From sequence record KU521356.1: a stretch of 64,000 bases of DNA; one strand, 5' to 3'. The position numbers and the translations under genes were made by a program. Each line of letters opens with the position of its first letter. Position 1 is the first letter of the stretch. Positions 3,281-14,450 of the stretch are shown here, one piece after another. The notes under the pieces are model-generated. The model was not told the DNA's origin. It did not search any database and saw nothing but the letters and a program-made list of their open reading frames with translations.

Positions 3281-12044
<8,764 letters not shown>

Positions 12045-12102: not shown

Positions 12103-12408
12103 ATGTCTCTACTTAAAAAGATCGGTCTAGCTTTAATTGGATCAGAAGGACGTAAGGAAGTTTTTGAACAAGAATTAACTAAACTATCAAATTCTAATGC
12201 AGTTATTGATCAAATGGTGATTAATTTACTGGGTAGTAAGAAGAAGTTAGATGACTTCCTAATTAAAGCTGAAGAAATTGATAATAAGAAACTAGGCTTC
12301 ATTAAAAATCGAGCCGAACTTATTAAACTAGTCAAATCTAAATATTCACAAGACCCTCGGGTTGCCGATGTAGTAGTGTCACTTTACATTGGTGGTTTCA
12401 TTTATTGA
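12103..12408 (+). CDS. Hypothetical protein
   Basis: 101-aa ORF with RBS aggt. Confidence 0.6.
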   Translation: MSLLKKIGLALIGSEGRKEVFEQELTKLSNSNAVIDQMVINLLGSKKKLDDFLIKAEEIDNKKLGFIKNRAELIKLVKSKYSQDPRVADVVVSLYIGGFIY

Positions 12409-12415
12409 GGTAAGT

Positions 12416-13108
12416 ATGTCTAAACCTAATCTTGAGTGGTTAGCTTCCTTAGAAAGTAAAGAAGCTAAAAGTACAGTAGATTCTTCCGATATGGATAATG
12501 ATCAAAAGGAAGGTAGCGATAAGTCTCAACAAGATGAAGCTACTGAACCTGAGAAGAAAATTACTGCAACTGATGTACAAATTGCAATTGAAGAATATGC
12601 GCGTATCCGTGCATTAACCACTACTAAAGATCTTCCAACTGACCCTGAACCAGGTGATACTTATCATGTAAATGGGGTAGATTGGATTTATCAAGAAGAT
12701 GGTGGATGGGTAACTATGCAAGGTATTTATGGCCATGAACATTTTGATGAAAATGGTCTAAATATTGAAGCAAGTGGTATTGATCAGAAATCAGGTGCAA
12801 CTAAACGTTATGTGGTAACTGGTTATAATGCTCAGACTAACCCAGCTGCTATGCCTGGTGATAATCTGACTGAATGTGTTATCCTAATGCAGAATGGACT
12901 TGTTCCAGAAGTTGGTGTAAATGGCCTAACTGCTGACTGTCTACTTAAAATCGTTAAAGATTTATTTGAAGGTTATCAAGCAGGCCCATTTGCATGTGAA
13001 GAGAATCAGGTAGTGATTAATTCAATGGACCGTGCTCTTAGTGCAATTCATCAACGCCTCGTAAGACGTAAAGAACAAGGTACTGAAGGTACCTATAGTG
13101 GTAATTGA
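12416..13108 (+). CDS. tad1: Tad1-family (Thoeris anti-defence 1) cyclic-nucleotide sponge homolog with N-terminal extension
   Basis: The C-terminal ~120 aa (MQNGLVPEVGVNG...LLKIVKDLFEGYQAGPFACEEN...RLVRRKEQGTEGT) match recalled Tad1 motifs (FQxG...ExGVNG, LLxIVxDRLxxFQxGPFxxREN, RxxRxxRGVEGT). Start 12416 follows RBS gaggt. Confidence 0.75.
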   Translation: MSKPNLEWLASLESKEAKSTVDSSDMDNDQKEGSDKSQQDEATEPEKKITATDVQIAIEEYARIRALTTTKDLPTDPEPGDTYHVNGVDWIYQEDGGWVTMQGIYGHEHFDENGLNIEASGIDQKSGATKRYVVTGYNAQTNPAAMPGDNLTECVILMQNGLVPEVGVNGLTADCLLKIVKDLFEGYQAGPFACEENQVVINSMDRALSAIHQRLVRRKEQGTEGTYSGN

Positions 13109-13115
13109 CATAAAT

Positions 13116-13140
13116 GCCTCCCTTCGGGGAGGCTTTATTT
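13116..13140 (+). terminator. Intrinsic terminator with UUCG loop
   Basis: gcctccc-ttcg-gggaggc-tttattt. Similar hairpins occur at about 16264, 20301, 22132, 28043, 29667, 35258, 35748, 38652, 41846, 42487, 45187, 47224, 48194, 50776, 51219, 53088, 54277, 57757, 57953, 60626 and 63167. Confidence 0.85.
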
Positions 13141-13163
13141 CGTATTAAAAAAAATTTGAGATT

Positions 13164-13171
13164 TATATTAC
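13164..13171 (+). promoter_or_regulatory. phiKZ-type early promoter core TATATTAC
   Basis: Intergenic exact match to the published phiKZ early-promoter motif, with AT-rich upstream sequence, just after a terminator. Confidence 0.7.
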
Positions 13172-13216: not shown

Positions 13217-14450
13217 ATGAGCGTTGTAATTTTCACTGCCAGACCTATTGGTTATAAAGTTCCTGGCGCTAATTCCACTGTAAATAAGTTTGCACTAAAT
13301 ACAGCTAATGCACCTAGTGTATATAGTTCTTCACCAGGATCACCAATTACTGCTCAGGAGAGTAGTTGTATCTATACACTCACTTCAAATCATGAGTTAA
13401 TCGCTGGGGACACCGATAAAGATAACTCCCTAATGAGTTTCAAACTAGTGCTTGCGTATAATAACGATACAGCTAATTATCTAATTAGTACGCAGGTTAT
13501 TGATAGTATCGATAAACTAAAAGGAGTGGAAATTATTAGTGAACTCAGTTTCAGTGTAATTGATACTGGTGCACATATGATCCGTAGAGTGAATTCGATC
13601 GGTGTATGTGAGGCTGTCGCCGCTCGATGGTCTCCAGTTGCAATTGAACACGTGGCTAAAGCAACCGAGCGTGAGCACCCTGGTACTCCCATCGGTGATG
13701 CTCGTGAGATGATCGACTCTGGTGAAGACCTGGGTGACGTATGTACTTCATATATCAAATCGAGTAACTAGCATGGTAGATAAAGACAAAACAATGGTAG
13801 ATTTGATTAAGTCAGCGCAAGAACTGACTTCACATCTTGGCCCACTGAATAAAGTATTAACTACCATTAATCTAATTGGTATGCCAGATGCTTTAAAAGA
13901 AGTAGTTAAACTCCCCGATGTAAAATGTGTTGTATATAAACGACCATTAACTGATAATCTAATTAAGGTTGTCTTTAATGATGGTAGTTGCTTTGTGATA
14001 AAAGATGTAAATTAAACCACCACCGTAAATAGAGAGAGTACTAAAATGTCCATCGAAACCACCAAGAAGTTTATCGAAACCCACAACCTAAATGAAAAAG
14101 TAAGCATGTCTGATGCCGGGGTATTTGAGATCCCTGACGGTCTATTTGAAGAAGTTGTTCTTCAACCAGCAGGCGTTACTGCCGAGCAGTATGCGCAGGT
14201 ACATGAAGGTGCAGGTCAACTAGCAGCGGCTGTAAGTTATGTATTTGCTGAAAAAGCCGCACCGTACATGAAAGAAAATGAAAGCATTGCTGAGCTTGGT
14301 TATTCTTATAATGCAGGCGGTGCAACTGTTTCTGGTATCATTGATCGCAGTGGTGCTCTTGTAACAGTTGTAGATACCAAATATAAGAGTAGCGCTATGA
14401 CTGACGTTGTTGAAAGTGTAGCCAGCTTCTTTGAAGATGTCAATAGCTAA
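13217..14450 (+). other. Three hypothetical CDSs: 13217-13771, 13773-14015, 14046-14450
   Basis: Consecutive ORFs with RBS-like motifs after the early promoter; hairpin terminator at about 14479-14505. Confidence 0.7.

Follow-up and report, generated by a model that had tools for sequence, protein, structure and literature searches.

Within the 64,000-nucleotide stretch of record KU521356.1 that we analysed (the window), an open reading frame of the + strand at 12416-13108 runs from an ATG (12416) to a TGA (13108) and comprises 230 codons plus the stop. It is a real gene, encoding a 230-aa protein, and is preceded by a GAGG (12407-12410) that shares bases with the stop codon of the gene before it. 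All residues of the protein (230/230, 100% identity) were those of chain I, named gp184, in PDB entry 8Y6V. In the PHROGs database, families of unknown function were the sole matches. In the phiKZ record the same gene is PHIKZ184 (AAL83085.1), annotated as a structural protein. The 3 kb between positions 11500 and 14500 were 100% identical to phage KTN4 and 99.5% identical to phiKZ, and by sequence the window is that of a Pseudomonas jumbo phage of the phiKZ genus. The protein shows no difference from phiKZ gp184, and its position after gp182 and gp183 matches too. The gene is the previously described, already known phiKZ gp184/Tad1, a sponge for immune signals that is carried in the capsid and injected. 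An initial annotation, made from the sequence without tools, had correctly inferred the mechanism, that is, an anti-immune sponge pre-loaded and delivered with the genome. As this biology was published, the annotation rediscovered it, and its core finding was nothing new.

Table 1. Features of the gp184 locus and of the two stand-alone anchor genes in related phages
Feature	Position	Strand	Basis or remark
Terminator-like hairpin, likely 5' boundary of the unit	10002..10029	+	12-pair stem with 7 G-C pairs, then a T-run
gp182 homologue, 664 aa, baseplate spacer	10050..12044	+	PHIKZ182
gp183 homologue, 101 aa	12103..12408	+	between gp182 and gp184
gp184/Tad1 gene	12416..13108	+	ORF; 100% to 8y6v_I; phrog_22140, E 9e-166
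Acidic disordered leader, aa 1-59, candidate removed propeptide	12416..12592	+	composition; pLDDT <50; conserved E13
Capsid-anchor module, aa 60-108, ending G106-H107-E108	12593..12739	+	strands in model; 8y6v_I match; stand-alone homologues
Tad1 sponge domain, aa 109-230	12740..13105	+	model pLDDT 88.5; Foldseek matches; profile E ~1e-11; residue mapping
Intrinsic-terminator-like hairpin (13116-13133) with T-rich tail	13116..13141	+	7-pair stem, 6 G-C pairs
AT-rich octamer, putative early promoter	13164..13171	+	46 nt upstream of the gp185 start; position fits
gp185 homologue, 184 aa, start of the following unit, outside the system	13217..13771	+	phiKZ homology
Stand-alone anchor, RVTF4	L004:2357-2635	n/a	92 aa, homologue of gp184 aa ~1-107
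Stand-alone anchor, Psa21	L006:2357-2632	n/a	91 aa, homologue of gp184 aa ~1-107

The gene had been said to follow a gp182-like tail gene with no obvious terminator in between. A gp182 homologue does lie upstream, and the structural atlas of phiKZ places gp182 in the spacer ring of the central baseplate, but a small gp183 gene intervenes (Table 1). The second part of the statement stood, as no terminator-like site was found on the + strand between 10165 and 13116. The initial annotation did not mention the hairpin that starts 8 nt after the gp184 stop codon. Its folding energy was -19.6 kcal/mol (z -3.71), and none of 200 shuffled sequences folded as well. With one hairpin before gp182, one after gp184, and none between, the three genes look like one unit, which would be made together with the structural genes. 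An octamer proposed as an early promoter is present downstream of the gene as described, between the hairpin and gp185. It occurs 13 times in the window against 7.6 expected, a count reached in 7 of 100 shuffles and not significant. We therefore rejected its enrichment as evidence of a promoter family. A scan for sigma-70-type promoters returned fewer sites than in shuffled sequences, in keeping with a phage that has polymerases of its own. Neither the gp183 nor the gp185 homologue had a Pfam match. At the position of gp183, five related loci (L002, L004, L005, L006, and L011) carry one or two small genes of differing sizes, ~120-175 aa.

The C-terminal ~120 aa had been assigned Tad1 motifs, and several sequence searches agreed on this. 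When the single sequence was run against the PDB with phmmer, Tad1 chains were matched at E values of 2e-6 to 4e-6 over aa 117-226. At E <1e-5, only gp184 itself and Tad1 chains were retrieved, the remaining rows having E values of 0.78 and 3.3. A 20-sequence profile matched solved Tad1 chains at E values of 3.7e-12 to 3.4e-11 and covered residues 6-124 of 125. In phage genomes, tblastn matched the founding Tad1 of Bacillus phage SBSphiJ7 (E 4e-4), and also a gene annotated "anti-thoeris viral protein". An AlphaFold model of the full-length protein was poor (pLDDT 53.9) and gave bad superpositions on Tad1 (rmsd ~15), but this problem was resolved by modelling aa 109-230 alone. The domain model (pLDDT 88.5) exhibited three beta strands and two long helices, and its best 20 Foldseek matches in the PDB were all Tad1 proteins, with TM values of 0.53-0.73, CbTad1 being the highest. 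Canonical short Tad1 proteins, that is, CbTad1 (7UAV/7UAW/8SMD), CmTad1 (8KBB), and the SBSphiJ7 protein, have the same fold of a sheet and two helices (TM ~0.7), yet their identity to gp184 is only ~20-28%. They also lack the N-terminal extension, and their packaging is not reported in the papers cited here. Pfam, NCBIfam, and PADLOC gave no relevant match, either for the whole protein or for its C-terminal half. In particular, the local Pfam model Acb2_Tad1_hairpin did not detect gp184, though it matched 3 of 60 relatives. A newer version of this model is listed in precomputed tables for a gp184 relative of 96% identity. Since the local model misses a named Tad1, annotation pipelines may overlook the jumbo-phage Tad1 clade.

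We then mapped ligand-binding residues by HMMER alignment to CbTad1 and CmTad1, the offsets being checked with six and eleven named residues, respectively. Residues F82, N92, R109, and R113 of CbTad1, which form the pocket for gcADPR and cyclic dinucleotides, aligned with Y187, N197, R214, and R218 of gp184. These positions were well kept among 166 close relatives: N197 and R214 were present in all (166/166), R218 in 160, and an aromatic residue at position 187 in 162. By alignment, the residues of the gcADPR/dinucleotide pocket are conserved in gp184, as in the canonical short proteins. Sequence similarity, fold, and pocket residues together place aa 109-230 in the Tad1 family.

A different picture emerged at the second site. 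R90 and T97 of CbTad1, which contact the phosphates of cyclic trinucleotides and are R and T in the canonical short proteins, aligned with E195 and N202 of gp184. An arginine at position 195 was found in only 14 of the 166 relatives. Thus, the canonical cyclic-trinucleotide site is probably absent from gp184, with the likely consequence that high-affinity binding of cA3/cAAG is lost. As the source paper describes a minority of Tad1 homologues without this site, we consider this a difference of subtype, and family membership still holds. None of the eight residues of the CmTad1 hexamer interface (R88, T95, K96, Q98, E99, M102, W103, and K106) was identical in gp184, so a hexamer of the CmTad1 type is perhaps lost as well. 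A phiKZ mutant sensitive to cA3-dependent CBASS is rescued by the trinucleotide sponge Acb2 provided in trans, despite the phage's own Tad1. This is consistent with the missing site, although only circumstantial. Two changes, FQ to MQ and REN to EEN, had been proposed to alter ligand specificity. Both are real in the phmmer alignment, F52-Q53 of CbTad1 corresponding to M158-Q159 and R90-E91-N92 to E195-E196-N197. The second proposal fared better than the first. The R-to-E change at aa 195 falls on R90, a documented phosphate contact, but M158 does not fall on a named contact: the F52-Q53 position is not among the ligand contacts named in the source text consulted, and the contact residue F82 aligns with Y187, a conservative change.

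The N-terminal extension was only partly of low complexity. The initial annotation had depicted the first ~105 aa as an acidic, low-complexity, propeptide-like extension containing ASLE and AIE. Both motifs are present, at aa 10-13 and 57-59, and the acidic character was evident over aa 1-105 (23 acidic and 10 basic residues, pI 4.2) as well as over aa 1-60 (16 and 7, pI 4.25). Disorder was predicted for aa 1-69 in the full-length model, and the leader carries a conserved N-terminal motif around E13, itself nearly invariant. Aa ~72-105, however, are not of low complexity and form a small beta module. In the full-length model, the anchor module (aa 60-108) consists of a short helix and three strands at 82-85, 88-92, and 98-100. 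The best Foldseek match of this model was 8y6v_I, of which only 34 residues are modelled (TMt 0.83, 100% identity), and the match vanished when the aa 109-230 model was searched alone. This places the piece resolved in the capsid within aa 1-108, in agreement with the mainly beta-stranded fragment described in the capsid paper. The propeptide-like reading would suit the acidic, disordered leader, but not the beta module, which remains bound in the mature capsid (8Y6V). The N-terminal part is more than a disposable propeptide, the module at aa ~60-108 being the sole part resolved in the capsid.

Published work covers much of the fate of the protein, and what had been suggested about packaging, processing, and delivery agrees with it. 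Yang et al. described gp184 as a minor capsid protein of the inner vertex-binding complex, located on the inner face of the vertex (PDB 8Y6V, a mature-capsid cryo-EM entry). They also reported that the head protease gp175 cleaves gp184 at previously verified sites. The modelled part was shorter than the cleavage product, which they ascribed to flexibility. Fossati et al. 2023 (PMC10449902) loaded phage particles with PHIKZ184 bearing a C-terminal 3xFLAG tag, subsequently detected the fusion in cells in which translation was blocked by gentamicin, and concluded that it was injected. Chan et al. 2025 (bioRxiv 10.1101/2025.11.23.690004) named the gene orf184/tad1 and found it non-essential. In their description, gp184/Tad1 has an N-terminus wedged into the capsid and a C-terminus that the head protease liberates and that is injected at the next infection. 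As cited by later papers, Li et al. 2024 (Nature) reported that phiKZ Tad1 acts against both CBASS and Thoeris; their 2023 preprint makes no mention of phiKZ.

In the Pseudomonas jumbo phages RVTF4 and Psa21, tblastn matched only aa 64-107 of gp184, and no Tad1-like match was found elsewhere in these two genomes at E<=1e-3. The matching proteins (XDJ14874.1 and YP_010347798.1, respectively) are syntenic stand-alone homologues of the anchor, encoded after gp182- and gp183-like genes, and are 41-48% identical to gp184 over aa 64-107. They lack the Tad1 domain, their C-termini being aligned with H107/E108. In the alignment, they end with G-H-V-stop and G-H-stop, opposite G106-H107-E108 of gp184. 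As these proteins end exactly at the junction, the Tad1 domain seems to be a graft on a minor capsid protein of older origin. G106-H107-E108 conforms to the three-residue rule given for cleavage by the head protease, and two metagenomic relatives with both anchor and Tad1 domain have G-F-E and G-I-E at the junction. Ahead of its Tad1 domain, gp184 has five candidate sites (E13, E16, E44, E59, and E108). The three-residue motif is by itself too short to inform and is weak evidence. Of 79 extended relatives, 45 had it shortly before the domain, against a background of 50%, that is, without enrichment, and we rejected it as a family-wide marker. The position of the junction, however, suggests that the protease cuts after E108. 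It may plausibly cut after E59 as well, since four of the five anchor-bearing sequences have an A/S-x-E at the aligned position. Both cuts together would yield a leader, a 49-residue anchor (34 of its residues ordered), and a free sponge of 122 residues. Such a two-cut model would reconcile the propeptide with the published wedged N-terminus.

Taken as a whole, gp184 is very probably a protein of three parts, that is, a leader, an anchor, and a Tad1 cargo, which is packaged, cut by gp175, and injected as a signal sponge. The protein would be made together with tail and baseplate genes and built into the procapsid. There, the beta module of aa 60-108 would be wedged beneath the vertex, with gp86 on one side and the centre of the adjacent hexamer on the other. 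Each vertex holds five vertex complexes, each with gp184, hence an upper limit of ~60 copies per head. The protease would then cut most likely after E59 and E108, leaving the anchor on the capsid wall and freeing the Tad1 domain inside the head. At the next infection, this domain would exit with the DNA and could bind the gcADPR of Thoeris and the cyclic dinucleotides of CBASS before any phage gene is expressed.

Other accounts of the N-terminal half can be set against this one. If the whole ~105-aa N-terminus were a disposable propeptide that is lost, only the ~120-aa Tad1 would remain in the head. Such a fate would suit an extension that is acidic, disordered over aa 1-69, and provided with the five candidate sites listed above. 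It is contradicted by PDB 8Y6V, in which a 34-residue piece of gp184, not derived from aa 109-230, is retained in mature capsids. Moreover, the module stands alone in RVTF4 and Psa21, which would be unexpected for a part to be thrown away. We regard this as very unlikely. Scarcely better placed is the idea that gp184 chiefly stabilises the vertex and is cut only near residue 59, so that the Tad1 domain stays tethered or aa 60-230 detach as a whole. The A/S-x-E near residue 59 would be the site needed, and the capsid paper's appeal to flexibility for the unmodelled remainder of the cleavage product would fit. Yet, the C-terminal tag reaches translation-blocked cells, the C-terminus is liberated according to the literature, and the G-x-E junction is precisely where the stand-alone anchors terminate. 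The gene is also dispensable at 37 C, unlike those of the structural proteins gp28, gp91, and gp119 (Chan et al. 2025). These points leave the tethered form improbable.

A further alternative concerns the dose rather than the processing. A maximum of ~60 molecules per cell amounts to ~0.1 uM, by simple arithmetic and assuming a cell volume of ~1 fL. One Tad1 homologue is reported to bind with affinities of 210-284 nM, and as the estimate is at or below these values, the injected dose may have little buffering capacity, limited to small early amounts of signal. The injected protein could then be incidental, with protection coming mainly from freshly synthesised cytoplasmic molecules that are not assembled into heads, in the middle and late phases, at the time of signalling by TIR- and cGAS-like enzymes. 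Short, unpackaged Tad1 proteins act in this way. What argues for selected packaging, on the other hand, is that the association of an anchor or leader with the cargo is conserved across genera, and that Tad1 has been fused independently to fragments of the major capsid protein (see below). We consider it rather unlikely that the injected dose is incidental, but this possibility is compatible with the packaged, gp175-cut, and injected sponge that we favour.

Full-length gp184 was found by tblastn in 47 genomes of the phiKZ genus at a minimum of 96% identity, and the profile search retrieved 4,410 cluster representatives at E<=1e-3. Among the 166 closest relatives, 79 had an extension of at least 60 residues ahead of the Tad1 domain, which was net acidic in 90% of cases. 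In gp280 of 201phi2-1 and gp217 of PhiPA3 (and in P0005-P0019), proteins of ~190-205 aa encoded in synteny after gp181-/gp182-like tail genes, the Tad1 domain is 54-62% identical to that of gp184 and the acidic leader has the same N-terminal motif. These proteins lack the beta anchor, however, and a leader of ~80 aa joins the Tad1 domain directly. A GenBank note reports the identification of 201phi2-1 gp280 by mass spectrometry. A third arrangement, from uncultured jumbo phages, was found in 7 of 60 extended proteins scanned, in which a fragment of the phiKZ-type major capsid protein (PF25620) occupies the N-terminal region. This fragment (profile positions ~142-280) together with a C-terminal Tad1 makes up proteins of 346-591 aa (P0080, P0113, P0101, P0047, P0094, and P0102). 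Such fusions occur at loci L007, L008, and L009:10001-11455, one of them on a metagenomic contig of 252 kb, and may be an alternative route for loading the sponge into capsids. The gp185-like neighbours in the window, RVTF4, Psa21, and PhiPA3 gave no Pfam match to the fragment of the major capsid protein.

These observations raise the possibility, which we put forward tentatively and at somewhat less than even chance, that jumbo phages repeatedly resort to packaging the sponge, as a modular strategy. The phiKZ genus would have grafted the domain at a protease site onto a stand-alone capsid protein, phages like 201phi2-1 and PhiPA3 would use a leader only, and uncultured phages would use a fusion to a capsid fragment. 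The packaged clade would lack the trinucleotide site and perhaps the hexamer. If true, these losses would fit a protein that has to pass down the tail and is exposed to early signals alone. The phage T4 internal protein I* works alike: this small anti-defence protein has an N-terminal leader that directs it to the prohead, undergoes trimming by the protease there, and is injected along with the DNA. Its fold and target are unrelated, as it inhibits a modification-dependent nuclease, whereas gp184 sequesters a signal. What the present analysis adds is modest, namely the placement of the junction exactly where a stand-alone capsid protein ends, the missing trinucleotide contacts in this clade, and the fusions of Tad1 to capsid fragments. 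These additions could help annotate packaged anti-defence cargo in genomes of jumbo phages and explain which host signals such phages can or cannot buffer.

Incidentally, we noticed at L002:9902-11023 a gene of 373 aa, 1.3 kb downstream of a Tad1-like gene, whose product weakly resembles the phiKZ major capsid protein family (E 3e-6, narrowly missing the Pfam cut-off). Moreover, tblastn matched gp184 at two places in each of the PhiPA3-type records of HPP-Temi, phiLBG22, PhiPA3, and BRkr, which suggests a second Tad1-like gene in these phages.
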